The notes under the pieces are model-generated. The model saw only the letters and a program-made list of their open reading frames with translations, was not told the DNA's origin and made no database searches. Both the position numbers and the translations under genes were made by a program. From positions 28,164,628 through 28,228,627 of the forward strand of contig OZ037767.1 in assembly GCA_964035545.1 (NCBI GenBank): DNA of 64,000 bases, in the 5' to 3' direction. This document shows, in pieces, positions 998-31,101 of the stretch. The DNA is from Bugula neritina. Taxonomy: Eukaryota; Animalia; Bryozoa. Position 1 is the stretch's first letter. Each line of letters begins with the position of its first letter.

Positions 998-2315
998 AGA
1001 TCATACTGGGAGTTGCGATAGCCTTGGCCATAGCAATACTAATATTCCTACTCATAGTGTTATACTGCTGCGAGAGTTACAGAAATCACAGGAAGTTTGC
1101 TAAGCTGCTGCGAATGCTGGGAGCCCCTCAAGCCCAAGACGACAATTTTGATGACTTTGAGGATTATGGGAAATCAGATGCATGGAGAGAGGAAACAGAT
1201 GCTAGTAAGTGCTTTTTGAAATACAGAAATAGAAATACTAACTGAATAATGGTGAATAGATGTCACATGAATTGTCTTTCCCTGGTAAATCTGCATTATT
1301 CGGGCCTTCAAACAGTAGATACAGTTTATATGGTCATAGAAATTACTCCAGTCAAATCGGAATAGATAGGAAAAGTAAAAACAGCTCAGTGAATTTGAGA
1401 AAATATAATACTACTTAGTCAACCTATTGTCTCTGGAAATGTCGTTTGTTAGAAGTTTACAAAATCTCAGACTAAGCCTACACCTGGCATGACATCACTG
1501 TGTCTATACACTGCGTAACTGTCAACTCCTAACATTATACACCACCATAATATTCTAAATGTTATTCTTTAGTGTGCAAAGTATGTCTGCTACACACACT
1601 ACCTCAACTCCCTTTTTAGATACTAAAATTACCTGTACAGAGAAATGTTTATGTATTCTTATTACTTAATACAGACTTCAAAGACTTAGGAGAGTACACT
1701 GGAGTCAAACCCAATGAGTTTCTAACCCTCGACAAGAAGGCCATGGAGAGTTCAGGGCAGATAATGTACGACACTCAGATGAGCACAATGACTACTGGCA
1801 GGGGAAACAGTTGCTCTACTATCAGTAGAAGCAGGATGTCTTCCCACCCCCCAACCAGTCCCATACACACCAACTATGGCTATAGTGAGGCACTAGACTA
1901 TGAGACGGGTTAGTTGCTTTCCTGCAATTCTACAAACTGTATTGACGTAATATATCATGTAAATACTTACTTAATTTGGATTTATCTTATCCCGTCTTAA
2001 TTACAGTATAAGCACAGTACAGTTGTATATTAGTATAATGTATAGGTAGAGGAAATGTAAGTTAGAAGTTGTATTATATATACTTATAAATATATTATAT
2101 AATATACTTATTTGGGAGTTGTCTTACATACCCTAAATACAACAACAGTATGGTAAGCTATTATACGTATATGAAATGTAAGACATGGCACATGGAGTTT
2201 AGTTTGTAGAATATGTATGATTATAAATATATTTACAGATGAAAACTTAGAGCTGGAAAGAAGGATGGCTGAGACATTGAATAAAGAGAATTTAGAAGAC
2301 ACATCCTACCACTAG
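998..2315 (+). CDS. SUEL-like receptor family paralog 1 (5'-partial): TM and cytoplasmic exons 998-1204, 1675-1908, 2239-2315
   Basis: Canonical AG/GT phase-1 junctions join IILGVAIALAIAILIFLLIVLYCCESYRNHRKF..., LGEYTGVKPNEFLTLDK...GNSCSTI and DENLELERRMAETL...YH*. Clearly paralogous to the exons at 12015-13707. No ectodomain exons were found in 1-997. Confidence 0.85.
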
Positions 2316-2815
2316 TAGAAATCAGCTTTTACCTCTACTGAACTCACTAGAATATTCTAGACACACCTGACATATATACTGCTAGAGGTCAATGCTAAAA
2401 TAGATGTCTCTGCTGATGCATAGACACTAGAAACTGCAAATCAATCACTAACATGAAAGCAATACAGTTGGAGATTTTGGAGGGGGAGTTTCAAGGTGTT
2501 TCAAAGTAATTATAACAGCTAAATCTGCTACATGACTACTATATAGTATATATTCAAATTTCAACCTAAGTTACTGATAACTTTGTGAAAATCTATGAAA
2601 ACTATAGTAAAAACTTGCATTTTTAAATAAAAACTTATACATTTAAAAAGACTACTAAACTAGTACCATTATAAAGAGAGGATAACTCACATATAAAGAC
2701 AAGTATGATAGCTATGTATACTCAAGGTTATGATGTATGAAGTTGCAACCCTACCAGTATATAAGTTAAGTATAAGCTAAGTGTAAGTTGAGAATTTAAA
2801 TTGGGTATAGCTTAA

Positions 2816-5800
2816 ACATCGTAGGCATCCAGGTTATTTTGATAAAATCAATTACTGTTAATTAAAAGATCATACTTTTTTAGTTGCATTCACAAAATAT
2901 ATACAAAAAATCTCAACTCAATATACCAGAAAAAATGAATTAAAATATATGTGTTAATAGCACTGATATTGACGTGACCGTGGCACATGAAAAATCTGAA
3001 AAAAGAGTTGTCTTCTATTTTTCTATATTAATATATAGAGCTTGTCGTGAAAATAAAGATTTTTTTAAAAAAATATTGTGACCCTCTGGTAACTTCCTGA
3101 ATTTAGAAAATTAGCTCATATATTTCTTTTCATGTGGACAACAGCTCACTTTTTTTTAAATTTATTTTGAAGCTCTTTTCGTAAAAAATAATCAAAAGTA
3201 AAAAATCCAAAATTTTTACAAATTGGTTCGGGGCTTGACGTGAAAGGCATTTGGACGAAGATGTCAAGGTCACCATTAATAAATTTATTTTATCACAATT
3301 CACAATACTGCACGGAAAGTTAATGAAGTGAGCTGAAAATTAGGTTGCTAGCATATTGATATACATTATATTGATTGTTGCAGTATTATTTTTTTAATTT
3401 GTTTTGTTATCAGTTATGTTTAACTTCTTCATAGAGCTGCTGTTAGACTAAGAGTAAGACATAATATTAGCAACAATGATAATATTAAATTAAAATTATT
3501 ATTAAATTCACGGTGAAGTATCACTATGAGTATGAGTATCGTATAAATTAATTATGAGTATGAGTATCACTATGACATAAACTCAATCAGTGATTGACTA
3601 TTAGTATTACTATGAATATGACTATGCATAACTCAATGAGAATATCAATATGAATATGGCTTCTATTCTTGTAACTTTTGACTATGACGATGTTGATACT
3701 GATCGTGATAATCACTGCCAGCCCAAGTCTCATACTCATAGTGATACTATTACTATTAATAATTAGTATTACTATTAGTACAACTACTAGTATTACTCAT
3801 AGTTCTGATAATGATGCAGATGATAGTTTTAAAAGTTCTACTTCTACTTTTATAGTAAGCTAGATTGTATATTATGTTGAACTCGACTCATTTTTTACTA
3901 CTAATGCTAATACTAATAGTAATAGTAATACTAATAATAATTATAGTTGTTATAATGATAGTAATACTAATAGTAATAATAACTATTTCAATTTGATAAT
4001 TTATGTTATATAACAGCATTATCGCTTATCAATTACATTGGTTCATAATATGCTTATTTTGATTTTGCTTTGTGTGTTTTTTTCATGTTGTAAATTTAAG
4101 TTCGTATGGTTATTTAATGAACTAGAGAACTAGCCAAATGTTATGTAACGGTTGCAGTAATTTACTATAAACTCAGTGAAATTTAAAACCTAATTGATAT
4201 TACTATGACATTGATTGTACAGAGGTAGCTAAAATATACATTAAATTACCAATAATTTTAACTCGCCAATACACTATGAGTAGAACAATCAAATGCAATG
4301 ATAGAAAATTAATTAGTCATAGCAGCCCGTTGCTTGAGGAACATTGAGCTACAGGTCTAAAATGATGTAGTTTTGTGATCCCTTATATAACAAAATAATT
4401 TTTTTTAACTGGTTTAATACTTTTATTATAAACACGCTTATCAAAGTAACATGTTTTTGATGTATATTCTATTAAAAAAGCAATCACATCAGGTTTTCAA
4501 TTTGTATGTTGTACAAAGTTTATTATGGTGACAAGTTACTAAATTATATGGTTCAGCTTTGTAAAGTAAAGCTGATAAAATAAAAACAATTATGTGATTG
4601 TTTTACTGCTATATATTAAATTTAAATGAGTTGAATAATATCCTAGTGCAGTGAATTAGATATTTTTTTAGCTTTGGTACACCTGTTTGTTATAGGCTAA
4701 CATTCCACCAATAGAAGAATGGTGCAAGTAGAAGAAATTTCAGGCGCAGAAAGCTAAGTAGCAGTCAGAATGCTGCCAGAGTTGTGAAGAGGCACTTGAA
4801 AAAGCTGAATTTCAATAATGACATGAAATTCGTAACAGATCACCCTGGTGTATTTGAACTGACATGGCCAGCAGAGTTCTCGAAGTCACATACAACAGCT
4901 ATTTACATCATCATGGTTAGCTTAAATTTAATTCCTATATCAGTCTCTAATATATAGTTTGATATCTGCTGTAAATTCACTTAAGGAGCATGCACATAAC
5001 CAAAACTGAGTTACACTATAGTATTTGTTCTTGAATATATTTACCAAGATAAGTAGATTTGCTAATTCATCAACAGTAAAATTATAATGATACAACAATT
5101 TTTCTTTTAGACGATTCAATCAATAACACAAGACACTACAACATGGTTTTGCAGTTATAGAGTATTAATTTTCTGGCTCTTTCCAAATCTTCATAGAAGG
5201 CAAAGAAAACCACTGCCAGCTTGCCTTTAAAACTGAGTGCACGCGTCTTCCACCTACAGATGATGATAAACAATTTGCTGGTGTGGAACTTTCTAATTTT
5301 GTTTACAATGAAGATAGATTATAGGACATTATTCTTTACGTAAAGATTGTCAAGTTTTGTTATAATTAAGAACAGTTTTAGTTTCAATAAATCGGTTCAA
5401 CATTATGGACATCATTGCACAAGCATTTTAATCTTTACTATCTACAAAGGTATCTGATGGACTACTTGAAAATACAAAACTATGCTCCAGATACACAATG
5501 AACTGACCAGCAAAGTTAAAATGAGTTGGAGATGTAGAACATAATATCTTGTTCAAGGCTTTTCCCTGCTGTTGGAACCTTCTACTTCAGAACACTGAAT
5601 TGAACAAACATATGTAGATATATGAAACTTTGCAAACAATAATAATGTGAAATTACTTGCTAAGTATTACATTGCTAATAAATACAGCATTGTGTAATGT
5701 TTTATTTAATTTTTTTTGAGCCATTTGATCTATAGACCCGCATAGTATTTACTATATTATAACTAATAAATTGCAGACACATTATGTCAGACCAGTTTCC

Positions 5801-8060
5801 ATTTAAATAGAATCGTGTAGGCTATCAAATTTGTAGAAGTAAAAAACCGCATTCTTATTGAGTAAAATACTTGCCTTTTTTTATGATGCCTCTACTGCTA
5901 AAAGAGAAGTTTTTATCAATACAGCTCCATCAATCTGTATCCTGATGAAGCTAGTAGTTTAGGAACATTTGTGGCGGGGAGTGTAGGCTGAGCTGCAGTA
6001 TAGGAAGAACCCCAACATATGTAATCTATTCAGCACATTATATACATATATTTATTCAAAAAAGAATTTAGAAAATGCTTTATGAAGCATGAACAAAGTA
6101 AAAATTAATGCTGGTGAAAGTAATATTATTACACCCATTAAAATTACTAGCAGCTATAGCATTAAAATTATGTATTTTCATAAAAATTTGTCTAATTTAT
6201 GCTACAAAGTTATTACTGCCAAAGGTTACAAAATTTACCAGTCACATTCATGCAGCTGGCGGAGAATAACTAACTTTCACATGCAATAAATACAATTAGT
6301 AGCTCAATCTAAAACTAATGCGCTATTAAATGTTAGGAGTATAAGTTATAGTTATTCTAAGGAATAATTGCAAAAAAAGTTACTTAGAGGAATTTAACTC
6401 TTATTATAATGTAATTATCTTCCAAGATATATTACAACATCACTACTTGGATGCATACAATGTCATATTTATATTGGCAACAACATAATTTTCAATAATT
6501 TCCAATCTATTAACTTGAGCATTATGATTGTGATTATTTTATAAATAAGGCGATTATTAGGCACTGTTGGTATTTTGGTTCAATTTATTAATAGCTGTAA
6601 CAGGCAGAGTTGTAAATATAATGGATATATCAAAATTCCAATAGGTATAGTACTCTAACACAACATTGATACTAATAATTGTAGCCACTTACTCTTAGAG
6701 TTAGTGAATAATGATACAGTCATAACAATCTGAATATCAATCAGCATTAGAGATAGGCTGACTGCTTTATAATATTATAGTTATTATGTCAAATTGAATT
6801 TATTCACTATAACTATAAAAATTATGATTATAATTATAGATTAAAATAATTTAAATATTACATAATATATTGATAATTATTGGAATCATAATTATATTTA
6901 TTGTTATGATCATTATGATTATAATTATTTAATATTATCTTTGTTTGTATTTAAAGTTGTTCCTTAAATTTAAAGTTGTTTAAGTTTTATAAATTTATTC
7001 TAATTATATTACTGTATAAGTATTGCTATTAGTATTAGTATAATTAAATTATTATAATTTATATTTTATTATTTATATTATTATTTATTTTACTTTTTAT
7101 TTTAAGACCAGCAGTTCAAATTAATACTTGTGTCGTTTGCTTTATATTATAACTTACAAGTATAACGATTAACATAATAATATTACATTTGTTATTAGTA
7201 TTACTATGAATATAAATATTTATATTAATATAAATATAGCTATCGGTATAACCTATACTTATAGTTATAACTAATATTATAAGTATTAGTTTCGAAACTG
7301 ATACTGCCATATGATTATCATTATGACTAATAATAGTGTTAATAAATATAACCATTGAATATTATTAATAATAGTTCACCAATAGGCGATAGTCATAGAC
7401 TTAGAGTTAGAGTGAGAGTCATAGACATAGACTAGTGATACTCATACTGATACTCATACTGTGATTCAGTTTCACTGATTCAGTTACAAATTTTAAAACT
7501 TGGTTTTACGTAGACAACTACTAACCTATAATTCATCACAAAACGGTTGAAAATCATCATTTACTGCATATTTAAGAGTAATTTTCTGGTAGTGTGGTCG
7601 ACATGATAATTGAAATTAAAATAGGGAAAATAATTATTTTGTGATTTACAGATAGTTACAAACTAGCAAAATGGAATTGTCTATTTGAAAACAGTCAAAT
7701 TAGTTACCTTTCTTGATGTTGCGTAGCTAACGTTAGTTATTAGTAGCCGCCCGAAGAGTAACATTCATGTGATTTGAACTACGAATAACGAGAATCTGTG
7801 ACAAACCCGCTTCTTAATAACTTTACGCGATATAAACTCACGCTACAATAGGGCTATTTTGCCATCCCCACGTCAGAATAGGACACGGAGGGCACGCTCG
7901 CGGGCAAGTCTGGGCAAGTCCAAGACACCTAATATGACCACTTTTACTTACATTTTTGTAGTATTTTCGTATAAGAAATTGGATAAAATGCTGATAAAAC
8001 AGTTGAAAAGCATGCAAACTTTTGCTCAAATGTAATAAATAACCTGGAAGCTTACCGCCT
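2816..8060. mobile_element. Decayed Kolobok-like DNA transposon (~5.2 kb)
   Basis: TTAA at 2812-2815 and 8061-8064. Imperfect TIRs: acatcgtaggcatccaggttattt versus the reverse complement of the right end, aggcggtaagcttccaggttattt (18/24). Contains a P2X7-ballast-like relic, a cargo known from Kolobok elements. No recognisable transposase. Confidence 0.6.
4696..5320 (+). pseudogene. P2X7 C-terminal ballast (Zn-binding Cys domain)-like pseudogene, two exons (~4696-4915, ~5111-5320)
   Basis: Frameshifted and stop-interrupted fragments in the expected order: EEWCK*KKFQAQKAK*QSECC, VTDHPG, SRVLEVTYNSY, FCSYRVLIFWLFPNLHRRQRKPLPACL, PPTDDDKQFAG. These match the family motifs WCxCxxC...CC, CITxHPGF, VL...Y, YR...W....L....R..(I/L)PxC, FP......G. 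Confidence 0.7.
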
Positions 8061-9529
8061 TTAAGTAGAAATTGGGCTGCCTTTGTCCATAGTATGTGTA
8101 TTAACTACTTGTTGAGTATCCATCAATGTTACTTGCATTACGTACATGTTTGTAATGTATTGTGAAACTATAGAATATATAGTATTTCATCCAATATAAT
8201 ATTATGTAAATGTATTATTACTGTTGCTTTATCATGCTTTCAACATTTTATTTCCAGTGTTGAAATAATTCTACATGCAACAATGTTTTACGTGAGGTGG
8301 CTGGTAGTAGCATCATCTTTTTTCATTAGAATATCTGATTAAATTAGCATAAAAAGCAAAATAAAAAAATCTAAAAATAAAATGAATATTGGCAGGGGAG
8401 TTGAACACTGGGTAACATAGTTGAGTTGATAATAGAAGAATGGAGATAAATTTTACTCAATTATATTTTGTTGCATGTATGTTTGAAGTTTAATTAAAAA
8501 TTATTCCAATTTAAAAGCTGTAAAATAAATTACTAAAACTAAGCTATCATACACTATTAAGCACCTACTAATATGAGGCTTCTCCTTAAACTATAGTAGA
8601 TAGGAAAGTAAAAATACAACTCTGCACACAGATGTGCAGAGTTGTATATTGCTACCTGCAGTTTTACAAAAAGCAAGAATTCAGGCCAACTGCTACTCTT
8701 TTCCTCTGATAAATTTTAGAATAATCAGTTGTAGTCAGCAGCCACCGACAGCAGCAATGGTGGCTGTAACCTACCATGACACAAAGCATAAATGGAAATA
8801 CTTATAATCAACACAACTTCAGGATGGTAAGTATTTTGATTTGCCAACCATACATAGCATTGGGTGAATAATGACAACATTTATAGAACTTTCCAAAACC
8901 AAAGTAGGGCACTTAACAGTTCACACTGCGCCAAGGTTAATGTTACCACTACTATATCTGACATTTGATTCACTTAAAATAAATTAAATCTTTATTTTAT
9001 AACATTATTTGGTATAACACAATAAACAGAATCAGTAAATGAAACATACTAACATCAAATCATATTATACTATAAAACTTAAAATATATTCTAATTTATA
9101 AACAGGGGAAAATGAAAATGGAAATAAATCTCAAAGAAGTCTAAAACCACAAGAAGTAGCTTGAAATACTTTTATAATTCAATATTGATCTATTTCAGAT
9201 CCATACACCACAAAACTAGGTTGTATAAACTATACATCAGTCAAGTCCCTATGGAGATGAAAAGATGGTTACCATAGCAACCATATTTCATGGATGAATT
9301 CACCAGAGGAAAGACTTTCAAGGCTTGAATAGGTTTCCATCAACGCAATGAGCTGAATAACACATATGTTGTAACAATAACCAAAGAACCAATGAGCTAG
9401 TAGAAGGCAACAACATCCTCCGAGGTGGAAGAGGTAATTAGTAAGCAAGAAGGCACAAGACTGCACAAGACCATCACTTGAAACCCTACAACACCCTTCC
9501 CATCACACTAACCAGTGCTGACACCCATA

Positions 9530-12500
9530 ATGTTGGGTACAACTCAAACTTTGGTAATTTTATTTACTTTAGGAATGTGTTTCCAGCACACATATCCATG
9601 TAAGTATTTCATACATCTAATAATAATTATATACCTATTATTATCAATTATTTAATTTTGTATCAGTTATCATTATGTGATATTCAGTAGCAGAACTTTT
9701 TTGGGAACTTGCATGTTGATAGTTATTTTGGGAAAGGTGCTTTGGAAACATTTCTAAGAGAATAATATATTGTTAGATTATATTAAAAATTGTGTTTGAC
9801 CTGACTTCATTAGTATAATTTCATTAATATACACTCTTAATAGTAGTAAAACAGCATTGGTCTACCTTGCATGTTACATATTACATACCCTATAATATTA
9901 TGGATTATTTGTACAACTTTGAAAATTGGTTTCAGTTGTATTGCGAGACGAGTCAATTGACGTCTGCTACAACAAACCAGTGAATCTGAACACATGTGTG
10001 TTTGGCGGAGTAGATCAGCAACTCCAAATCAAGTCCATCTCCATTTATTCTCACTGGGACACCGCTAAAATTGCTAGTGAATCGAATTGTTTCGCTTTGA
10101 GAAGTTGCGAGCCACGGGTGATACACAGTATGTGATAAGTATAAAACATACGGATACTTTACTTTACACACAACGCTGTTTCTCTAAAGAATATTCATCA
10201 CAAAATAGGACTTGGAGATGAAACAATTTTTCATTAAATTTTTGATAGCAGTAAAACCATACAACTTTAAATTTTCTAGTCATTTTATGTCCAAGAACGA
10301 AAGATTTTAGGTAACATTAATGTTGTTTGCTCAGTTTTCAAACTTTTTACAATTTGTTTAGCACAAATTAAGCTAATGTTTTCAACAACTCCTTGCAGCA
10401 ATAGGAGACTCAGGAATTTCTCCGGAGTACAGACATCTCTACCAATGGATATTGAACAGATGTCACGGAAAACCTAAATGTGATGCAAGCAACGGTACAC
10501 TCCCAGACTGGTGGCAACTTGTTGATGATGATAATCCAAATTGTGGTGACGGGAGAACTTTATACTTTACTAGTATTCATATCCATGCTGAGTGCATAGG
10601 TGAGTAAAACATGTCTACTATAAATTTCCAACAAATAAGAAACTGCCCTGCATTTATGATATGCGTAGACACTGGCTTTAGGGTTTTAAGTTTTACAAAT
10701 AGGTATATAGACTTCTAGAGATATTGATTACAATATAATATGCTGACTTATAACATAAGTTACGGTAATGGCAAAAGACAATCAGATGAAAACTACTACC
10801 TATCCAACTTTTTTATGACAGAATATATTTAGTTGCCAAGTGATAAAAATAGGGTGAATAAATATTCAATAGTTGAAGTAAAACAGTAAAGCTATGAATA
10901 AAATTAGGTAGAATTTGGCTTTTTGGCACAGAAATGAATAACTACAGCCTTACATTTCAAACATTTCAGTTAACGAAGACCCATTGGTAACTGTACCATC
11001 TCCACCTTCAACTGTACCCCAAACCAGACCAACTACGCCAACCACCACCACCGCCTTCCCTGTATTCATTCCAATCTACCAACCAGCTTTAGCTGGCAGA
11101 GAAAGTAAGACTACAGAATTAAACATTGTAAACTTAATTCTAACAGTATGAATGATTTGTTGTCTTCAAGAGTAGATCACATTTGGTATGAGTTAGATTA
11201 TAATAGTCAGTACTAGTTGGAGTAGATTGAGTATGAGTTAGATTATAATACTCAGTACTAGTTAGAGTAGAATGAGTATATGAGTTAGATTATAATACTC
11301 AGTACTAGTTGGAGTAGATTGAGTATATGAGTTAGATTATAATACTCAGTACTAGTTGGAGTAGATTGAGTATGAGTTAGATTGCTATAGTCAGTACTAG
11401 TTGGAGTAGATTGGGTATGAGTTAGATTACAATACTCAGTGCTAGTTAGAGTAGAATGAGTATATGAGTTAGATTACTATACTCAGTGCTAGTTAGAGTA
11501 GATTGAGTATGAGTTAGATTACTATACTCAGTGCTAGTTGGAGTAGATTGAGTATGAGTTAGATTACAATACTCACTGCTAGTTAGAGTAGAGTGAGTAT
11601 ATGAGTTAGATTGCTATAGTCAGTACTAGTTGGAGTAGATTGAGTATGAGTTAGATTACTATACTCAGTGCTAGTTAGAGTACTATCTATAACAGCCATA
11701 TTCAAGTGTATTCACCTAAAGAAAACACAGGTTAAGATGGTTAATCTGTAATCTTACTAATAAATTTCTAAGTGAGGAGTTAATCCCGAGCTTAATATCA
11801 TCCATGGTGAACATGATGACTATTGAAAGAGCCTATGATTTTACCTACATTTCTAGTCATCGTTCCCTTAACAGCTGCACAGGAAGGCTAGGTAATGGAA
11901 GTTAATACAAAATTAACAACTTCCAGAAGGATGAGAACATGAGTGGTAGTCACCAACACGTGATGTTTATTCACTGGTCAGGAAACAGGATATAAAGAGC
12001 TTGTCTATTTGCAGAAGTCATCCTCGGTGTGGCTATTGGACTAGCGCTGGTTATTCTCCTGGTGCTGCTCATAGTTCTGTACTGCTGCGAGAGATATCGC
12101 AACCACAAAAAATTCGGCAAACTTCTCAAGAAACTTGGAGCACCGCAAGCCCAAGAGGATGCATTTGACGAGCTGGATTACGGTAGAAAAGATGCTTGGA
12201 GAGATGAAACTCAAAGTGAGCATTCTAGATCGATTTAGTGTCAATATTTCCAAATATATGACCAATTTTATAATTCAAATTATATAGTGTCAATAAGTTT
12301 TGAAATAGTGATTGATTGATTTATTTATTGATTGATCTGCAACGAGTACAGCTGTCTGCAATGCTCTTTTAAGCAGTGTCTAACGATTTACTTTTCATAC
12401 AGAAATTGTTGTTAACACATCATTGGAAATATCTTGTAGATCCAGACGCCCTGGGAGAGTACACAGGTGTTAAACCAGATGAGTTTCTGACATTAGACAA

Positions 12501-13707
12501 GCATACGATGGAGCAGTCCGGACAGATCATGTACGACACAATGGCTAAAGGTAACAGTTGCTCCACAATAGATCGACTGGAGAGAAAAGGAAGTCCCTCT
12601 CAATCATATCTGATGGCAGGTTATCGCCACCAAGGACCCACTGATTACAACACAGGTATAGTTTGGTTTCACCATCTAGTGGTTACAACACAGGTATGGT
12701 TTGGTCTCACCATGCATCTAGTGGTTACAACACGTGAGGAGCTCTTTTTAAGCTTATCCCTTCTTAGTTCTTACCCGATAAAGAAGTCTACAGAATAATA
12801 ATGAAGAATGAGTCATGGTGCTTTTCCAGTCTTAGTTTCCACTCAGTTCCTATTTCATTATAATGTTACAGATTTCTCTTGTCTGTAATCATACAGGTGC
12901 CCTTAGATAGTATCTGAGTCATAAAACATAGTTGAATTTCCAGAGTGCCAAAAAATTTCTTTTAGCTCTCCTAGTGTTGGGTTGTTGCAGCCACTTGGTA
13001 ATTAGTGGACAAAGTATGTTTTACATCCATAAGTTGAACGTGTTTAGTCACTGCTCAAGAGGAACGATATTTTCTAGCTAAACTGTCATGATATTTCATG
13101 TAAATAAATTCTAATGCAACAGATACATGACTAAATAAATAATTTAAAAGGAGCACATGTTAAACAATAGAAGGGTTTTTGGTATATAAAAATGAGTCTT
13201 CTATGAAGCCATCTTTGGTAGAAATTAGAATAATGTCAGTTAACTTAGTAGTGGAAAAATAAAAAAAATATAGTCCAGATGTCATTTTTACCCTTGAGTT
13301 TAGGATAGGTATTTTTTGAAAAGCTGAAAAAATTTGGATTTAAGCATTTATTTTGGGGACATCTATTTCTTAAAGTGGGAAATCTTACAACATTTGCCTA
13401 ACTATTTAAGGACTATACATAAGGTCTATGAGAATATAACTTGGATATTTTTCTAAGCATGCTACTTTTTCACACTTTACACTGCACACATCTCCAGCTC
13501 TCTGGACAGAAGTGCTTGCAAATTCCTGAGTTAAACAGTGATAAAAATTTCACTCAAAACTGAAGAGATAGTGAAAACCAAACTAGAGTTATTGAAGCAA
13601 AGAATCTGATAATATTTTTGTATCTTGAAGCTGAGAACCTGGAGTTAGAACAGAGAATGGCTGCAACGCTGAGTACAGAACTGGAAGAGGAAAGTTCTGC
13701 TCACTAA
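9530..13707 (+). CDS. SUEL-like receptor family paralog 2, ~363 aa; exons 9530-9599, 9936-10127, 10399-10599, 10970-11104, 12015-12215, 12440-12655, 13631-13707
   Basis: All introns are GT-AG and phase 1, and the spliced length of 1092 nt is open. Signal peptide MLGTTQTLVILFTLGMCFQHTYP, 8-Cys domain with CHGKPKC, Pro/Thr stalk, TM ending in YCC, conserved tail. Confidence 0.85.
11186..11681. repeat. Intronic minisatellite, 45-47-bp unit, ~11 copies
   Basis: Tandem gagttagattataatactcagtactagttggagtagattgagtat(at). Confidence 0.9.
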
Positions 13708-18700: not shown

Positions 18701-19967
18701 AACTACAAATGAAACTGCAACAACTACAAATGAAACTGCAACAACTACGAGTGAAACTACATCAACTACAAATGAAACTGCAACAACTACAAATGAAACT
18801 ACAACAACTATGGGTAAAACTACATCAACTACAAATGAAACTGCAACAACTACAAATGAAACTACAACAACTACAGGTGAAACAACTACCCCAGCTACAA
18901 ATACATCAACAGCTGTGAATACCTCAACTCAAAGCACTACTGATGGAGGATCATTTCAACAGGGAAGCAACATTACACCAACCATAACTACAGAATGTAA
19001 GTTGTGTTGTAAACCAAAAACATACATTCTGAGCCACTATGTAGCACTTTCGCTGAGCACATTACTAGATTATTTTTATTTTTAACATAAGAATCTTCTC
19101 ATATCTTGTTTAGAGTAATTGAACAATGTTCCCGCAAGTAAACAATTACCTAAATACAAACAAACTTTTCGACATCTTGTATATATTAACTTTTCTTTCA
19201 TTAATTAATTACTTGAACATTCTCTTTTGACATTCACTAGAAATATTATGCTACCCAATAGATAAGACAATTCCTCATAAAAACATACAATGACTATTTC
19301 AGCACTGATAATCATCATAGTAGTAGTGGTGGCAATAGTCCTGATAGCAATACTGGTTCTCCTTATCTACTGCCTCACTACACGAAAGGCAAGATCTAGA
19401 AATGGAAATGTCGAAAGTGCAGAAAATATACACGATTCCAGGGAAGTTTTAACTGGTAAGTATTATGTAACTGGTTATTTGATGATGGGTTGTGGGATGG
19501 TTGTTTTTAAAGGTCTGGAGCTGTTAATCTCACTCAAATAATGGAATTTTTAACCTAAATAATTTTGGTTTTTTGTCCTAAAAAATTGGGAACTTTTGAA
19601 GATAGTTTTTTGCAGACTAAAAGTCTGAGAGTCATGAGAAGTAATTTTGCCTTCCGAATATCACAATACTTCATGAAAACTTACTTGTAACTAATTGAAA
19701 ATATTAAATGCAAGTTCCATTGCTAAAATAGCATTTATTGCATAATATCTAGTACATACATATTTATTGTCAAAATAAGAGGGACTTATAGAACATATGC
19801 ATGTGTGCAGATGAAACTGCATTAAAACATTTGTGGAGACAACTACTAGCACATTGCTAGACAAATGATACTAAATATTTATGTGTTTAGAAGAAGAGAA
19901 TTTAGCTGCCGAGAACTTAGCTGCCGAGAACTTGAGAGCAAAACCAGAGGAATCCATAACCATTTGA
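15712..19967 (+). CDS. SUEL-like receptor family paralog 3 with long mucin stalk, ~640 aa; exons 15712-15778, 16214-16402, 16957-17157, 17761(or 17767)-18996, 19303-19455, 19891-19967
   Basis: Signal peptide MRGFLLYSLAFVLPLLLPAVHS; 8-Cys domain (YRYLYSWISHSCEGKQRC...IPLWW...YEC); 1.2-kb Thr-rich exon; TM LIIIIVVVVAIVLIAILVLLIYCL; phase-1 GT-AG introns. Confidence 0.85.
17820..18890 (+). repeat. Coding VNTR, 21-bp unit encoding (N/G/S)ET(A/T)TTT, ~50 units with a higher-order duplication
   Basis: gaaactgcaacaactaca(aat/ggt/agt) repeats. Block ~17880-18100 recurs at ~18380-18640. Confidence 0.95.
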
Positions 19968-20976: not shown

Positions 20977-23900
20977 ATGAACCTGCTCACATTGAAGATA
21001 ATACTTGCACTCCTGGTTTACTACCAAACTGAAGCTTGTAAGTAGTGAACGTTATGATTCGATAGAGAAAAGAGGTGGGATAAATTGAAAATGCTTAAGT
21101 TCTTTATTACCCTTTATGATTTTTGGTCTAGGGTTTGGGGTTGAAATCTGTGTCGCATAGATAAACACCATTTCTAACTTTCCAGTAAATACAATGTGTG
21201 ACATGAATGCACCAGCTTCTGTTTTACTAAATAATTCAGAAAGAAAATGTCTACAAAATAACATTTTTCAAAACCGTTACTGTTATTTCTAAAAGTATCG
21301 AATTGGTTTAAAGTTTTACAACAAAATGTAATATAAAAATCTTATTAAAAACAGTTTCATCCAAATTCATCTTGAAGACCATTAATGTAAGTTCTTTCAA
21401 TTGAGATGTTTATGTACCTCTTATACTCAATTCTATTTAATTATTTATTCAAAACAATGTGAACTAAATATTACAGAGTGAATTTTGAGAAAAATAAATA
21501 AAAATCATCTAAAAATAAATCCATTTATTATTAGGAAAATCCTTCCCTCTCTTAGATGTTTATAGAAAAGAGTAAACAATTTCATAATTAAAATAATATA
21601 TTCGATAAGTTAGGTATTTAACATCAAGTAACTTAGACGTCAGTATCCTTCAGGCTTACACTATAGTCTATAGTCTATACCATTAGTACACTGAAACAGC
21701 AATTAATACTAGACCTTTAGAAGGTGAGCTCAACACACTAAACTCTCTAAACTTCAACTGTGCAAACATGGTACTAAAAATGTTTTAAACTTCAGTTCAA
21801 CAGTTTTCAACTGTTGGAAAACAAATCTTTCATAGACATAAAAGTTAGTAAATATCTTTCAAAATATCTAAATTTTGAAAATCAAGTTGGCAAAGATGCA
21901 AAGCAGGGTGGATGGTGCCGTATAGTTGAAAACAAAAAGTGGTAATATCAAATATCTATAGGCATTGCATGAACAGTGTTTAGAACACAGAAATTATTGG
22001 CACATTATCTCACAAAGTACCTAATTTCAATTTCACAACTTCTAACACAAAGTAAAATGGTAATATCCATTAAATATACTGTATAACCTAACCACAGTCA
22101 TTATCTAATATGATAATTAACATTTAATACAAACAAAATTTACTATTAATTATTCATAAAAGAGATTTTGAGAATATATTATAATCGATTAAACATACTG
22201 CATGAACTGGAGTTTTAAATGATTTGAGGTGCAAGTGAGTATGTTCTACAACACGTGTGGACCACACCCCTCCCCCACCTGCACCATCTGTCCCTGCAGG
22301 ATCTGTCCTTAGAGCATGCAGTGCATTGTGATATTAGTGAGATATTCAACACTAGTAACAAGTGCATGAGCTCAAGAGCATAAAAGTGCATATACAAGGA
22401 AGAGAAGAGTCCACTTTTAATTCCTAGCACATTATAAAGCTTCCCAACGCAGAATTTCGAGGCATATTCTCGATCTATATTGAACACATTTTCCTTAGTA
22501 TAAAAGTTTGCTAGAAGAAGGTTTTATTCTTAAAAGTTTTAAATCAACATACTATTTTCTTCTATAGATATAAATAATCGAAGTTGTTTTCATCATCAAG
22601 TCTTAATTTAAATTACAGGGTGATTATAGTTGTGTTGTATTTCAATCACTTAGACGTGTCGGAAACAATAGACTTGCACGGCTGTCAGGGGAGACGACTG
22701 CCAATGGAGGAATGTAGTGACCCAGCGTCAAAAATGAAGGTGGAATCAGTGACTATATATGCCACAGCAAACTCTACTAAGATAGCCAGCAAGAGCTGTT
22801 TCTCCATACAAGACTGCCCAAGAACTATACACAGTGAGACGAAGACCAACACAATATATAATATTGAGGAATTGATTTGACTTATAAACATGGTAGTGAG
22901 AGTGAACTACAGTAGTCGCAAATAATATTATGTGTGCTAACTACAGTATGCTCATATATACTATGTGTGCTAAATGCAGATGCACAAGAAATTGTCTACC
23001 CTTTTGTCTGCCTAGCATTGTAAGTTGAAAAAAATGAAACCAGTAACAATAAACTCAAACTAAATAAAACATTTCATTTACATTTAAATTTATATTTACC
23101 CTGTATATGAATTAATATTCAATTTATAGTAAAATTTGTATTTAATCCACAGCTGCTGATGACGTTGGGATAACAGATACATTTCAACATCTGTATATGT
23201 GGATTGTACACAAATGTGAAGGGAAACGACACTGTGACCCTGGAGGACAACTCCCACACTGGTGGTATCTCACTAGCGACTTTAAGGATGATAACTCAAA
23301 CATGTGCCCTAAAACGGGGATAAAATATTTCGCCGCTGTTCACGCCCACATATCCTGCGTTGGTAGGTGATAGGAAGACATTGCAACCCTTGTGAAAAGT
23401 TTCTGTGAGACTATATGATTTAGATGATATTTTCGTACAGCTACATTGGTGCAGTTTAGTCATTGTAAAGGCTATGAGCTATACACTCTATTTAGTATAC
23501 TTATAGTTCAGGAAAAAGAGTTTTAGTTTCACTAATGATTTACTAACTTGAAATATTTAATTGAATTTTGGGAATGAAATTCTTTGAGTTTTCTTGTAGT
23601 AAACGAAGACGTGTTCACCAAGCCACCACCTCCAGAAACCACACCCAATACAACACCAGCCACACCTCCAACAACTGTTCCATTTGCAGCATTTATCCCA
23701 ATTTACCAACCAGGACTAATTGGACGAGAAAGTAAGTAATCCCAGTTGGCTTCTAGTAAAAATGATAATGAAATTTCTCTGACCATGGGGATGCCAAAAG
23801 ATTAATCATCATTTCTACTGAGTTTGATAATATTTAGGAGCTTTTTTTGAGTAGGTTATTAATTAAAATTAAGAAAATGTCAGCAACACCAAATACTATA

Positions 23901-24910
23901 CTGTTGACTTATTATTACAGAAATATATTTGGGAGTAGCAATTGGCCTAGCCCTAGCAATACTGATACTAATACTCATCACCATATACTGCTGCGAGAGA
24001 TACAGAAACATCATGAAACTGAGTGTATTGTTACGAAAACTCGGGGCACCGCAAGCTGAAGATGGTGGATACCTGGACGAGCTGGAGAATTATGGGAAGC
24101 CAAATGACTCATGGGATAACTACAGTAAATATTGTTACGTGCTGTAAAACATACAGGAGTTTTATCAAACACAATGCCAAGTTTGTTATGCAAATGAGAT
24201 TCTTTGAACAATCATCACAAGACAAATGCTGTAATGGTGACTCAAACAAGCTTGAAATATAATTACGTATTACAATAGGCATGCCCACTTCCACAAAATC
24301 ATCAAATTTCATAACAGTATTGAACTTTTTGATTAGTATTGGTAGATTATTGAGACTGCAGGGTGTAACTTCCATGTTTCAGATCCTGACTGCATAGCTG
24401 AGTATTCTGGGGTTAAACCGGATGAGTTTGTGACGTTGGATAGAGCCTCCGTAGTGTGTCACAAGCAGTATATACTTGGACACAACACTCTACGCTCAAC
24501 CAACTCCTGTTCAACAATAAACAGAGCAGGGTACGAGCATAGCCTGTGGAGACTGAATGGCCAAACTAACTCAGGCTATAGAGAGTACAGAAACTCTCTC
24601 AATACAGCCACACCGGGAGTTGTCCCGCTCAGCTACGAGTCAGGTACCAACTATATTAATATAATTAATACACTACAATATTATAATATAATGTATTAAT
24701 GCAATATAAATAATGTAATTTATAATATAACATATATATATAATATAATATATATATAATATAATTAATACACTACTATATAACAATAATATATATAATA
24801 ACATATACTACAATAATGTGATATATAATATAATATAACAATATAATACAAAATATAATATAATGCAACTAATACACTATAATACAATATGATATAAATA
24901 AGAATATATT

Positions 24911-24977
<67 letters not shown>

Positions 24978-26157
24978 TATAAATAATTAATACACTATAT
25001 TATTTTTTAGCCCCAAAGTAGCCCAGAAATAATAGGAGAAAAGGAAATCCAATGACTAAACAGATATACTAATTACAATAATAATAGCAGCTGTCACTTG
25101 CAATACAATGCTATAACAACTGGGCTAAGAATAGTTGACAAATCTAAAATTAATATCTGAGAAGATCGAAATAATTATTCTAATAGGGCATGTCAATTTA
25201 AGTTTGATAGTTCTAGACTCTTGATTAATAGTTAGCGCTGTTCAGTGAGTAGAACGTTTAGTTTGGTGGAGTTGGGTGCGCCATACTGTGCCAGTAACTG
25301 ATGATGTAAATGCAATGTGTGTTCACTTAAATGCTAAAAATAGCCCTAATTCATTATCAATTCAAAAATTGTGGTTCTTGCAACAGTTTTACATCATCAA
25401 GAGTTTTGTGATATTACGTTCTGTATACTTTTGAACAAAGAGCGGTGAATATGCGAATGCAATGAACTTTTCTCAATCTTTACCGATTTCACAATCCACG
25501 GAACTAAACGAAACAATGGTTCAAAAATAAAAAAATTAGCAATACCATTGAATAAATATTTAACTATATCACTAATTTTCAAAAATCTAAGGCCTGAGCC
25601 TGCTTTAAATAACCCTTTTCAACCAGGGGTTTACAGTGAATATAAACTTGCATGAATTTGAGTTTTTTTTTTATTAATTTTAGAAAACGCATTAAAACAA
25701 AGTTTGCAATGCTGGCACAATATGCCAATGTATTAGCATTTCTCAAACCCTCTGCTATTCTTTTTTGACAGCGGAAAACATAGAAATGGAGAAAAGAATG
25801 GCAGCAGCTTTGGGTCCACCAAGCAACATGCAAACAGAAGAAAGATATTACAGACAGAGTGAAGATGAGAAGCTATACAGCAGCGATGAAACAGCTGGCT
25901 CTGACAGCAGCGCAAGTAGAATATTGGTGGGAGAAGATGACTCTAACAGCAGCGCAAGTAGAATAGTGGTGGGAGAAGATTACTCTAACAGCAGTGGAAG
26001 TAGAATAGAAGATGATCCATCAGACAGAGAAGAATACTGTGAGACAAGAGAACTTCACATTATAGCAGAAGAAAGGTTTGAAGAGGAAATAGCCGAAGAG
26101 GAAGTAGCCGGGCAAAGTGATCTGTACACCCTACAGACAAAGAGATCTCCGTTATAG
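20977..26157 (+). CDS. SUEL-like receptor family paralog 4, ~477 aa; exons 20977-21037, 22654-22833, 23153-23362, 23600-23731, 23921-24124, 24383-24643, 25772-26157
   Basis: caccATG start with signal peptide MNLLTLKIILALLVYYQTEA; 8-Cys domain with CEGKRHC and CPKTGIKYF; stalk ending FIPIYQPGLIGRE; TM-YCC; long acidic tail. Spliced length of 1434 nt is open. Confidence 0.85.
24915..24975. repeat. (TA)n microsatellite within an AT-rich low-complexity intron
   Basis: About 30 TA units. Confidence 0.95.
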
Positions 26158-27487
26158 AGCACAGAAAAGGTATTCACTCTTCTTGTAGACAATAGCAACT
26201 TAGTCTAGCAGTCATCGAGCCTAGTTATTCTTCAGGTCAGCGTAACTAAGCAGTCAGTGTGAGAGAAGGGTTATAATAATAGTAATAATAATAATATAGT
26301 GACAAGAGTGGGCAACTCCCCAGCAATTAAAAAGATGATAATATTCTATACACATGGAGAAATGTACTGGAAATATTAATCATTTCTTAGATCCTATCTT
26401 ACTGCAGCCTTTGCCTATAGTATTTGTCTATAAACTGATTTTTTTTAGACTTGCTATCATGAAAAAAAATGGAAAGACTCAACTAAGTCAAACTAAAAGT
26501 ATAAAAAATGTATAATGTGTATAGCTGATATTAGCAGCCGTGAGTATGCAAACTATTCTCATTATGTTACAGAAAATATGAAGAGATCAAGATTATGCAG
26601 CAGACGTTGCTTGAGGTAAAATACCAATACTCGATACAAGGAAAGAAAACTCCCACATCACATCAGAACATGAACTCTTTAGTACTTACTACCTTTATTA
26701 TAAGTACCAGAACTTTTTCAGTTTAAGTGCCATAGAAGCCCAGAAATCTATCAAGTCTACAGAAAATTAAAACTAAACTATTTTTCCAAGTATGTAATTC
26801 GATAAAATCAGCAGGAAAATTGTAAATAGGCCACTTGTTAAAACTTGTATATATTTTCTGTATGATAAATATTATATGTATAGTGCTTGATGCAAAAATT
26901 AATCATAAAATTGCCACCCATTTTGTTGTATACTACTTCTCTGTTCAATAAAAATTTGTAAATATTATGTCCTGGATAAATTATTAACCATAGAAACTCG
27001 CATTATTAAAGAACAACTCTTCCTCAAGTACAGCAGTTTCAAACTAGCATCACGGCTTTAACTATGAGCAAGTACTGAAGAAAACACGTGTGGAGTGTGT
27101 CTCAAACCTACACTAACTGCTTTTATCAAATGTATTTTGTAAGTTCAAAATGCATTTTCCATTTAAAAAACTGATATAAGTGATAAATCTAATCAGATAA
27201 CATACACCTACACACACATATCCATAATTAAGTAAATATTATAAGTTTAGAGACAAAATTCCATGACTGGTTTGAATGCAACACTTTTTTTGTAATTTTC
27301 TTCTCTCGCTTAAACAGTTAATTTATGGCCATAGTTTCATGATAAATGGATAGCATTCAGACAGATATAACACCTATTAACACTTCAGTAACCAATCAGA
27401 AAGGAGAAAAACCAAACAATAAAACATTTTGCAAAGAAACTGAAGGCCTTGAGATTAGTTGAGCATCACCAACAGGGGTTAGAGAAC

Positions 27488-30400
27488 ATGGAGTGGATAT
27501 ACATAAAAATTATCTTTATTTGTACCAGCTACACCATCGTACAGGAATGCACAGCGTGTAAGTTAAAATTAAATCAATATTGAAATGTATTTCCAAAGAA
27601 AATCATATAATGTTTATGAGCAGACTGCAACTTATGACTAAATGAAATACATTCCAATGGTGACGTGATGTGAATTAGATTAAAGTTTAAAAATCAAAAT
27701 TGATTAGTTTCAATAAAAAATATGTTCAGATGTTAGTCTTGCATGACCTTACATTTAATTATTCTATTCATAAAGATTAGATTAATTTCTTTTGTTTTCA
27801 GTCACGACAATGAACATGGATATCTACGTATGCCAGAATGGATATATCCCACCAAGCAAATGTTTTCATGAATTCTCTGTGATGCATGTTCGTTCGGTGA
27901 GCCTTCAGTTCAAAGACAGCGCTGTCAACGTATCAGATAGAAGTACGAGGTGTCATCGGGAGGTCAAAGTGCAACGAAAAATCATCAGTAAGTCTCAAAT
28001 TATACTATATTTCAACTTAACACAAAGATAATTAACATCTTCAACTTAAAAGCCTAAACTGATACAGTAGACCTAAAATATCATCTAACCTGATACATGC
28101 TGCTTCACACAAATCCTAAAAGTCTTAATTCTACTTCGTCATTCCAACCAAGTCTCAAACACAAGATCAACTATGAGAATAACCTCAGAATGCAGTAGAT
28201 AGTTTCATAGAATGATATTTCTAGACATCCTGGACCAAGCCCTGACCCCACAGTACAGATACATATACAGGTGGGCCAGACACAAGTGCCAAGGTAGGAG
28301 GGAGTGTCTACCTGGTAGACTACCCAGGTGGGATCAGATCCAAGGAGACGGCACGGCTGAGGGGAAATACTTTAGCGGGATTCGTATAGATGCAGCGTGT
28401 GACAGTGAGTTGACAATATGAATCTCTAATATCAAAGTTGCCTTTTTAACATATAGCTAAAAGAAGAACTTTATCCCAATAGTCTATGGTCAAAAAGTTG
28501 AATAATTTTACCATCAAGGTGAAAGAGGTTTCACATATTTAGGCTGAACTGCCATTAGTGTAATTCAGTATTACCACAGAATGAAAAAGTAGCCCCAGCA
28601 CCACAAGTCAATCTTGTATGTGGTGATGATGGTAGCATTACAAACAAAGAAAACAGATATAACACACTTGGACGATGATCCAACACTATTTATATGTTAA
28701 TCCTCAAACCTTTATAAACTTATATCTCATGCAGCTGCACCTTGTAGTATGAACATTAATAATACTATCATCATATGGTACTCTGTAGCAATACCAGTTC
28801 CCACAGAGGAAGCTCCCGTATCCACGACAACGACATCCACAACTACAACAGCCAAAGCTGCCGCCATATCTTTCTACATTCTCACACCGCAGCTGACGCA
28901 CATAGAAAGTAAGTCTTAGAGTCTACACTCTGATACGTAACCAACACAACCATGAAATTACAAACGTAACATTCAACTAGACTGTAGAGGTTATTAAAAT
29001 TTCCATCTATATTTTGACTTACTTTTAGGAATTATGTTGGGGGTAAGCTTAGGTCTCTCGATAAGCATACTGTTGGTAACCCTGCTACTTCTGTATCACT
29101 GGGACACCATGCGAAGGAAGAGAAGACTGCTGGAAATACTGGATGACATCGGAAGGCCCCATGAAGAACACGACTGGTACGTTGACGAGTTGGTAGAGGA
29201 GCAGAAATACTGTCAGATGAATTCGATAAAACCAGACGAAATAATGACCTTGGACAGAATTTCACTGCTTTGCACAAAACAGGTTATATCTGAAGACAAC
29301 TTGAGCGTATACTCGCACAACTTCTGCGCTACAATATCACGGAACAGCGTCAGAAGTAACGGCAGCAGAGGCAGTGGCTGGAGAAGCAGCGGTAGGGGAA
29401 GCAATAGAGGATACACAAATGATGCCTTCTCATCTCTATTAGATACAATAGATGCCACTCGGTCAGGAGGCTTACAGATACCATCAATAATAATAAGCGC
29501 TCCTATGGATTATACATCAGGTACTTATCCATCAAGTTTAACTCTAGACCTCAGAGAGTACATCCAGGTCAATCTCCTATTAAAGTTGAAAAAATCAAAA
29601 CCACAAACTCAAATAAATTAGTGATTAGGTGCCTTTAGTTTGAGATTATGCAACTTTCCCCTTGGAGATGGTAAGTCTTTAAAGAAGCCATTTTGTAGTT
29701 GTTAGCGAGCACATTTGGGTACCGTGTGATTCTATAACACAATTGTCATCATTTGGGAAATGGGTCTCAGAAGGACTGGTTTCATTGCAGTTTAATGTAT
29801 ATTTTCTGCCATTAACAAACAGCACTCAAGCATATTATTGATAAACAAAAATACATGGGGAGGTAAACTCTATCTATATGACTACAAATTGAATCCAAAT
29901 TCAGCAACTAAATTATGACAACATGAAATTGATTTTAGCCATAAATAAATTACTTATTGCAATTGTAGAGGAGAATATGGATTTGGAGAGAAGGATGGCC
30001 GAGACACTAGGATACCACACATTAAATGAGAAATCAGTGACACATGACACTTTGACTAGTGATACAGGTGCTTTGACAGACAATATGGACGGTTTGACTA
30101 GTTTTATAGATGCTTTACAAAGTAATACAGAAGCTCCAATTAATAATACAGAAATAGAAACTGAAACTAGTATTGAAGAAGATGATAGTTCGAGAAACAC
30201 ATCAGAGACAGGAAGTTTGTATCAGCCAACTGAATGCATGGAAGAGCTTATAGAACCTAAACTTTACAAAAGTACAGACACTGCTATATTCAGCACCAAC
30301 AACAATACAATAACAAGTATCACAGAAATCACACTAGCTCCAAGGATATGGGTAAGTTTCGTTGTACATACCTATTCATGATAAATTAAAGGTCAGGGAT

Positions 30401-31101
30401 AGCAATAAATTTTGCTGCAAAGTCAGGTGTATTTTGGGAATGTGTGTGAAGTTTTTAAGAGATGAAATAATAGGAGTTTAAATTTCACTAGAAAAAAATA
30501 ACACACAAATCTTCTTATGACATATCTTGTATATATTTTACACATATCTAGCATGTTTGAGGTCTGTTGTCACCTTAGGATATTATTAATCCCATTCACA
30601 AGCTACTAAATCCACTTGACATAAACACATGCACACCAAAATACAACTGTCATGTTACAGTCAGACAAAGGTGATACCTTATTGATACTTTTTCAAACAC
30701 ATTCGTCTTCTTGCATATGTTTACACAAAACAAATCATAATGTCAGTTAGATTCAGTAGGCTTCCAGTTTTCTAATGATAACAAAAATGCTGGCAGAACG
30801 TTTTTTAGTGTTCCTTTAAAGCCAGAAGTCCAAGAGAAATTTTGCAAATTATAGCATATATCAACATAATATTTCAAAATTGCCTTATACTACCTACATT
30901 TTGGTATACGACATACAAATAGATTCTACTTTTTACCTTTTATTCTAGAGAGTGGAAGCTCGGTTCAACACGGCGACCAAGAAGAAAGTGCCTATTAGTA
31001 ATATACAAACTAAAGTTCATGTTATTGAACCAACTTACTACAGATGTGACTTGATACAAGACACGCAGCAAAACATGACTCTGGAGTTGGACAAATTTTA
31101 G
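27488..31101 (+). CDS. SUEL-like receptor family paralog 5, ~527 aa; exons 27488-27557, 27802-27987, 28225-28404, 28789-28908, 29029-29520, 29969-30351, 30949-31101
   Basis: Signal-like exon MEWIYIKIIFICTSYTIVQECTA; 6-Cys version of the domain (YRYIYRWARHKCQGRREC...LPRW...KYF); Thr stalk; TM; KPDEIMTLDR, NFCATISR and ENMDLERRMAETL motifs. The last exon is less certain. Confidence 0.8.

Follow-up and report, generated by a model that had tools for sequence, protein, structure and literature searches.

The window studied here is a 64,000-nt stretch of the Bugula neritina genome (C3:28164628-28228627 of a 216-Mb assembly), AT-rich with about 35% guanine plus cytosine (GC); coordinates count from its first letter, and negative values lie upstream of it. 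It carries a tandem array of genes for putative single-pass membrane receptors, whose cysteine-rich ectodomain is predicted to have a diverged fold of the SUEL/rhamnose-binding lectin (RBL) type. An earlier note on this DNA had claimed at least five same-strand paralogs with a shared exon structure. These were confirmed at their coordinates, with four complete paralogs (P2-P5) and the 3' part of P1 inside the window. As a sixth paralog, P0, was found just upstream of the window (-10644 to -3172), the array is a tandem family of six genes, P0-P5, and not of five. Exon families were sorted by all-against-all comparison of plus-strand stop-to-stop frames, extended 40 kb upstream. The common exon order is signal, E1 and E2 (both cysteine-rich domain exons), Pro/Thr stalk, transmembrane (TM) exon, tail 1, and tail 2. 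The genes of the window are:

998-2315, plus strand: P1, 3' part, from tblastn of KAF6036676 and splice contexts; TM 998-1204, tail 1 1675-1908, tail 2 2239-2315 including the stop codon.
9530-13707, plus strand: P2, from homology to P1 and Watersipora proteins and from in-phase GT-AG sites; signal 9530-9599, E1 9936-10127, E2 10399-10599, Pro/Thr stalk 10970-11104, TM 12015-12215, tail 1 12440-12655, tail 2 13631-13707.
15712 to at least 19455, plus strand: P3, the mucin variant; signal 15712-15778, E1 16214-16402, E2 16957-17157, mucin exon 17767-18996, TM from 19303.
20977-26157, plus strand: P4, from splice contexts and homology; signal 20977-21037, E1 22654-22833, E2 23153-23362, stalk 23600-23731, TM 23921-24124, tail 1 24383-24643, tail 2 25772-26157.
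27488-30384, plus strand: P5, to which KAF6036671 maps, from splice contexts and an AlphaFold2 model; signal 27488-27557, E1 27802-27987, E2 28225-28404, stalk 28789-28908, fused TM and tail 1 29029-29520, tail 2 29969-30384.

P1 begins before the window, with its signal, E1, E2, and stalk exons at -2015 to -37, and coordinate 998 is the exact acceptor of its TM exon. According to the splice contexts, every intron of the array paralogs is in phase 1. The shared exon plan thus stands for all paralogs in phase, with two exceptions in layout: TM and tail 1 are fused in P5, and in P3 the short stalk is replaced by a mucin exon (1.2 kb, 410 aa, Thr-rich, a 21-bp unit repeated 52 times), followed by a TM region and tail unrelated to those of the other paralogs. 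The public proteins KAF6036676 (P0002) and KAF6036671 (P0008) correspond to P1 and P5, respectively, and their annotated splices agree with the present models; RefSeq models of Watersipora use the same junctions as the Bugula paralogs. The exons of P2, P3, and P4 were handled singly, and P0002, P0008, and the Watersipora proteins stood in as whole proteins. A 962-nt contig from the Joint Genome Institute (JGI), encoding the relative P0037, holds the stalk end, TM, tail 1, and tail 2 in a single open frame, with about 390 non-coding nt after it. It is most simply a spliced mRNA, because the same parts in Bugula are spread over four exons and 2.7 kb. Two runs labelled RNA-Seq, whose RNA status is a guess, hold 12-14% of the words sampled from window 22300-30400; as this stretch is mostly intron, the share is about what exons alone would give.

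Two repeats were noted in introns of the array: a 45-bp minisatellite between the stalk and TM exons of P2 (11186-11682, 10.9 copies, 89% matches) and an AT-rich simple repeat in P4 (24721-24770).

The predicted proteins have a type I single-pass layout with a signal peptide, one ectodomain, a Pro/Thr-rich stalk that is presumably O-glycosylated, a TM helix, a Cys-Cys pair, and a cytoplasmic tail of about 140 aa. Amino acid identity between the paralogs is 15-44% in E1 and 29-52% in E2, against 63-76% in the TM exon and 39-59% in tail exon 1. These values bear out the strongly divergent ectodomains and conserved TM and tail regions described before, except for P3. Alignment of 11 TM/tail segments revealed the conserved blocks LYCCE-YR--KKF--LLR-LGAPQAQ, an acidic D-FD--DYG, GEYTGVKPDEFLTLDK--ME--GQIMYD, and NSCSTI-R; five paralogs have the last block, DY-T-EN-E-E-RMA, at the beginning of their final exon. 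The motifs are common to P0, P1, P2, P4, and in part P5, and the signalling tail proposed for the whole array may thus be shared among these paralogs, not by P3 with its different tail. The C-termini vary further. The last exon of P0 (-3692 to -3172) encodes ENLDLEERMA and then about 14 tandem heptads of the form GY(V/E)ERA(D/E), an acidic tyrosine array that the other paralogs do not have. The C-terminus encoded by tail 2 of P4 is long, acidic, and Ser-rich with a 42-bp repeat, and P5 carries a long Thr/Ser-rich C-terminal extension. Pfam searches with the tails returned TM-type noise only (FAM176 in five of the 11 members at no more than 16.7 bits, as against Mid2 in ten), and a search of the tail against the ESM Atlas gave no usable match. 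A link to EVA-1/FAM176 through the TM and tail region was considered and rejected as TM noise. The genome contains one weak FAM176-like exon, at C5:5.78 Mb, with no clear SUEL exons nearby.

A profile of exon 2 searched against the whole 216-Mb genome found seven loci only (E-values 5e-37 to 1.5e-16). Six of them form one same-strand row at C3:28.157-28.193 Mb and the seventh lies at C3:12.99 Mb; no haplotig or extra allele of the array was found in the assembly by this genome-wide search. The distant locus (C3:12985502-12988690) duplicates 2.8 kb of P1 at the DNA level in inverted orientation, from the signal through E1 and E2 to the stalk and with the introns, at 86% identity; it is a truncated pseudogene, as a stop codon interrupts its E2.

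When the six E2 exons were searched as a profile against 1.84 billion representative proteins, 33 matches resulted, none of them at E < 1e-30. The full-length matches were KAF6036676 and KAF6036671, both "hypothetical" proteins of Bugula neritina, and five "uncharacterized" proteins of Watersipora subatra, three of which have accessions within XP_067947752 to XP_067947758. The remaining matches were single-exon fragments from short contigs, a multi-SUEL lectin of anchovy (see below), and one bacterial repeat protein, the last regarded as noise. Two of the fragment contigs bear ENA labels beginning "BRYA16", which we read as bryozoan-associated metagenomes, something the label itself does not state. 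A word-indexed protein search added a single member, P0037. No relatives outside bryozoan material were found among the 1.84 billion proteins, and literature searches on bryozoan or Bugula rhamnose-binding lectins and SUEL found no published description of the family. The earlier view of the family as undescribed is therefore supported at the level of the sequence searches: no full-length match to a characterized family was obtained, and all relatives found are unnamed or "uncharacterized."

The ectodomain comprises about 130 aa, with one domain per gene, and is about 35 residues longer than the canonical SUEL/RBL domain. Its cysteine pattern reads C-x9-C, C-x5-C, CxG(K/R)xxC, PxWW, and (Y/H)F...C, as the earlier note had it, with x11 for the first spacing in P0. 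Two exceptions were not listed there: P5 is without the fourth and seventh cysteines, and P3 has the mucin exon and the unrelated TM region and tail. AlphaFold2 models were obtained for P1 (predicted local distance difference test score, pLDDT, 90.5; predicted template modelling score 0.84) and for P5, the most divergent paralog (pLDDT 90.0). The underlying alignment was shallow (seven full-length rows plus fragments), and both models were built from this one shared alignment.

SUEL/RBL domains, and not another fold, came out first when the models were searched against known structures. With Foldseek against the PDB, the top 11 matches were all SUEL/RBL domains (latrophilin Lec, LAT-1 Lec, CSL3, SUL-I), the best at an E-value of 0.019 and a probability of 0.98. 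VIA-align, which is independent of Foldseek, was run exhaustively over 48,161 representative PDB chains with both models. It placed the identical eight entries on top: six with SUEL/RBL domains (two ADGRL3 Lec entries, ADGRL1 Lec, SUL-I, CSL3, and the lectin-type C-terminal domain of a rice beta-galactosidase) plus two Plasmodium falciparum entries, P113 and the RH5-CyRPA-RIPR complex (PfRIPR). Z-scores were 5.0-5.9 for P1 and 5.4-6.6 for P5 with 83-91 residues aligned, a range that in entries with a single domain covers the lectin domain almost completely; the next, unrelated rows stood at Z 4.3 and 4.8. Cores of the nucleoplasmin type rank just below the SUEL entries, and this is also the nearest unrelated fold to a genuine RBL structure (Vakonakis et al., PMC2430599). 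In the ESM Atlas, 22 of the 30 nearest clusters by features have some SUEL_Lectin members (21-36% in the top three) at a score of 0.91, and the structure matches include EVA-1C and SUEL clusters with template modelling scores of 0.50-0.55 over about 95 residues. As these scores are moderate, they speak to the level of fold only, and each search alone would be weak. The case is carried by the agreement between the methods and between two models, albeit from one shared alignment. Taken together, the modelling supports a strongly diverged SUEL/RBL alpha/beta sandwich with five strands and one long capping helix.

The cysteines are consistent with this fold. P0-P4 have eight cysteines in the canonical RBL order, with an exact C-x5-C after the long helix. 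Canonical RBL disulfides connect C1-C3, C2-C8, C4-C7, and C5-C6, corresponding in Lat-1 to Cys41-71, 50-128, 83-115, and 96-102 (PMC2430599). The P5 lineage (Bugula P5, Watersipora P0025, and the fragment P0026) has six cysteines and is without precisely Cys4 and Cys7. Their joint loss fits the RBL disulfide map, as they are both partners of one predicted bond (canonical Cys83-Cys115). The number, order, and paired loss of the cysteines would thus all fit the predicted map.

Sequence searches, on the other hand, did not place the domain in Pfam family PF02140 (SUEL_Lectin, Gal_Lectin), to which it had been assigned. Pfam yielded nothing significant for the single exons or the full-length members, and for single exons no PF02140 match was obtained at E ≤ 10. 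Among the full-length public members the best score was 12.9 bits (E 0.15), for Watersipora P0022 only and in register, as compared to a gathering score of 31.4. A six-frame scan of the genome with the PF02140 hidden Markov model (HMM) detected canonical domains at C4:10.59 Mb and C3:21.47 Mb and none in the array. The family profile does match eight SUEL repeats of an anchovy lectin (E 7.9e-4), through the repeated xCxGKxxC stretch only; hhalign against these eight domains gave a probability of 29% over 16 columns, restricted to the CxGKxxC helix. A sequence profile against the PDB returned noise only and no relative. By the threshold of PF02140 itself, the family is not a member, and of the original assignment only the fold, supported by the models and structure searches, can be kept.

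In the RBL domain of Lat-1, rhamnose is held by Glu42 (directly after the first cysteine), Tyr63, Gly117, and Lys120 of loop2, and each of the replacements E42D, E42Q, and K120R abolishes sugar binding (PMC2430599). For RBLs that are attached to receptors and have lost Glu42 or Lys120, as in EVA-1, the ligands have been argued to be non-carbohydrate, and a single RBL domain has only weak affinity for sugars (PMC2430599). In P0-P5 the residue following the first cysteine is S, Q, Y, Q, Q, and Q, respectively, and Glu in none. The absence of the sugar-binding YGR and DPC motifs, as claimed before, was borne out by the alignments read against the Lat-1 study (PMC2430599): no member of the family carries either. 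K-Y-F at the canonical KYL position is kept in P0, P4, and P5 only. Because the Glu, YGR, and DPC are gone and K-Y-F is confined to three paralogs, canonical rhamnose or galactose binding by the heads of the array is not expected. The PxWW loop corresponds in sequence to the canonical loop2 and is the likely ligand contact; no other part of the models has lower confidence or varies more in length. Several of the best PDB matches are complexes of Lec with teneurin or of LAT-1 with TOL-1.

Age and selection were assessed with a second B. neritina assembly (GCA_010799875.2), whose contig VXIV02000690.1 is collinear with the locus. The two are 84-92% identical, uniformly and with the flanks included, and the contig presumably derives from a different cryptic species, or from a deep lineage within the complex. 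Compared exon by exon, each of the six genes is intact in both assemblies and under strong purifying selection. Between the assemblies, E1 plus E2 show a non-synonymous divergence (dN) of 0.017 and a synonymous divergence (dS) of 0.20 (dN/dS 0.08, 765 codons), and the TM plus tail exons a dN of 0.013 and a dS of 0.18 (dN/dS 0.07, 591 codons). For the ectodomains of single genes dN/dS ranges from 0.03 to 0.18, with P2 highest at 0.18 and P3 at 0.10. The per-exon comparison of the two genomes thus gave no excess of non-synonymous change in the ectodomains.

Between paralogs, dS is saturated in every exon, the well-conserved TM exon included, and dN is 0.6-1.4 in E1, 0.35-0.8 in E2, and 0.16-0.29 in TM. 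The saturated dS indicates that the likeness of the tails was kept by selection and not by recent gene conversion, and that the duplications are old. In exon-wise best matches and an exon-2 tree, Bugula P1 pairs with Watersipora P0035 and P5 with P0025 at moderate support (bootstrap 86-91). As the tree is poorly resolved (3 of 26 inner branches well supported), only the pairings P1-P0035, P5-P0025, and P0-P0004 were used. Accordingly, P1 and P5 have probable orthologs in Watersipora, and at least part of the expansion would predate the split of the two genera. The family is therefore lineage-expanded, as had been proposed; on the saturated dS and the Watersipora pairings, the expansion appears old and bryozoan-level and not a recent species-level burst.

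The gene in which the array is nested, in antisense orientation to it, encodes a Brr2/ASCC3-like helicase (DEAD, Helicase_C, Sec63) and spans at least 80 kb. The same nesting is found in Watersipora, where a helicase gene for 1783 aa spans three receptor genes. The surrounding features are:

34900-47000, minus strand: helicase exons, with a Sec63 exon at 45056-45364; further exons lie at -33690 to -32670, with a second Sec63 domain 33 kb upstream of the window.
2812-8065: 5.25-kb insertion between P1 and P2, 26-31% GC, no long open reading frame (ORF), with 29-nt terminal inverted repeats at 2811-2839 and 8037-8065.
42558-42962, minus strand: DDE_3 transposase ORF (E 1.2e-8), a Tc1/mariner-type remnant inside the helicase gene.
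63254-63831 and -23951 to -23290: dispersed repeat on both sides of the array, frames 69-96% identical, probably a transposable element.

The 5.25-kb insertion is absent from VXIV02000690.1 and has at least 27 near-full-length copies in the genome at 96-100% identity, three of them at 100%. Such identities mark it as a very recently active, apparently non-autonomous DNA element.

Three known systems are close to these receptors in one respect or another. The best structural match is the Lec domain of latrophilin/ADGRL (2jx9, 5afb, 6vhh, 8djg; LAT-1 8suf; Z 5.5-6.3, 86-93 residues aligned), likewise a receptor-attached single RBL with eight cysteines and a long helix ending in C-x5-C, and used by latrophilin for protein binding. 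Latrophilin, however, is a seven-transmembrane adhesion G-protein-coupled receptor with Olf, HormR, and GAIN domains, and its Lec domain scores above the PF02140 threshold and, in mouse, retains Glu42, Tyr63, and Lys120, whereas the bryozoan domain is longer by about 35 residues, fails Pfam, is without these three residues, and belongs to a single-pass protein that has a mucin stalk. The closest overall architecture is that of the Slit co-receptor EVA-1/EVA1C (C21orf63), a type I single-pass protein with SUEL ectodomains without key sugar residues and a non-catalytic tail. It differs in having two canonical PF02140 domains and a FAM176 (PF14851) TM/tail region in place of one cryptic domain, a Pro/Thr stalk, and a family-specific tail. 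Soluble RBLs (SUEL; CSL3, 2zx0; SUL-I, 5h4s) share the fold (Z 5.8-6.6), the eight-cysteine order, and CxGKxxC, but are secreted tandem-repeat lectins with YGR, DPC, and KYL and proven rhamnose or galactose binding, whereas the bryozoan proteins are membrane-anchored with one domain.

On balance, we consider it probable that the array encodes single-pass receptors of an old and conserved family, with SUEL-like heads that are sugar-blind and bind proteins, and with an ordinary role in adhesion or recognition. Duplication would have come first, and the heads would then have diverged toward different ligands. These are most likely proteins, as they are for the receptor-attached RBL domains of latrophilin, with teneurin and TOL-1, and of EVA-1, with Slit. 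Through the conserved tail, P0, P1, P2, P4, and in part P5 would be linked to one common intracellular partner, and P3 would be a mucin-type variant with a different tail. Such proteins might act as cell-surface adhesion or recognition receptors or co-receptors in normal tissue or larval biology and not as a polymorphic self/non-self system. Several points weigh against this interpretation. Every sequence method for SUEL membership stayed below significance, and a Z-score of about 6 is in the range where the tool warns of a mere common arrangement. The three paralogs with K-Y-F (P0, P4, P5) may have a modified sugar site. The tail has no detectable relatives in Pfam or the ESM Atlas, the splice models rest on one intron-less foreign contig and public gene models, and the selection comparison covers two genomes only.

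The same findings were weighed for other explanations. That the proteins are true carbohydrate-binding lectin receptors (for microbes, the Endobugula symbiont, or biofilm settlement cues), with a sugar site remodelled from the LYxW and PxWW aromatics, is conceivable but not likely. The fold belongs to a lectin family, sugar sites typically have conserved exposed Trp and Tyr, the PxWW loop stands at the sequence position of loop2, and three paralogs keep K-Y-F; yet none of the six has the Glu after the first cysteine, where even E42Q or E42D is enough to end binding in Lat-1 (PMC2430599), YGR and DPC are missing, there is one domain per protein, and proteins have been argued to be the ligands of such receptor-attached RBLs. 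That the domain is an unrelated Cys-rich beta-sandwich, similar to SUEL by convergence or through a modelling artefact, we regard as quite unlikely. The sub-threshold sequence tests, Z-scores of about 6, template modelling scores of about 0.5, and the shallow alignment would agree with such an origin, against which Foldseek, VIA-align, the ESM features and structures, and two models all rank SUEL first, and the eight-cysteine order, the exact C-x5-C, and the paired loss of Cys4 and Cys7 fit the RBL map.

The family is not an EVA1/FAM176 protein. Descent from fast-diverged EVA-1/EVA1C orthologs, expanded in bryozoans as Slit/Robo co-receptors, is very unlikely, even though the overall architecture matches, the Atlas structure matches include "Protein eva-1 C" and a SUEL+FAM176 cluster, and the TM exon of P2 gives a weak FAM176 match (E 0.0066, 16.7 bits). 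This match is below the 31.5-bit cut-off and behind generic TM families, full-length P0002 has no FAM176 match, the tail motifs are without relatives, and there is one SUEL-like domain, not two. The locus had also been put forward as a candidate for immune, allorecognition, or gamete recognition. In a colonial animal, surface receptors in tandem, their heads diverged and their tails conserved, do recall allorecognition loci such as Hydractinia Alr and Botryllus fuhc, and the highest dN/dS was found in the P2 ectodomain. A polymorphic or fast-evolving locus of this type is nevertheless highly improbable, and the proposal did not hold: ectodomain dN/dS is 0.08 and reaches 0.18 at most, the assemblies diverge as much in the flanks as in the array, the paralogs are ancient, P1 and P5 have probable orthologs in another genus, and there are only six genes and no haplotig was seen in the assembly. 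The allorecognition label, attractive as it is, is thus corrected as unsupported.

A more far-reaching idea, which we hold to be unlikely, is that the six heads form a small, fixed bryozoan "recognition code," each with its own partner and feeding into one new signalling pathway through the tail motifs. If true, each partner could be another paralog acting in trans, a ligand specific to a zooid or tissue, or a cue from a symbiont or biofilm that the larva senses, and the code would be a lineage-invented form of cell-cell communication suited to colonial life, with a SUEL fold blind to sugars as its basis.

With the interpretation favored here, adhesion or recognition receptors with protein-binding heads, a hidden branch would be added to the small SUEL/RBL fold family, annotated only as "hypothetical" because it is invisible to Pfam. 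The paired loss of Cys4 and Cys7 together with the loss of the sugar residues would make it a natural case of a lectin fold turned, probably, into a protein-binding module. Bryozoans, which are almost without characterized receptors, would gain a defined six-member surface set with a design of head, stalk, and tail.

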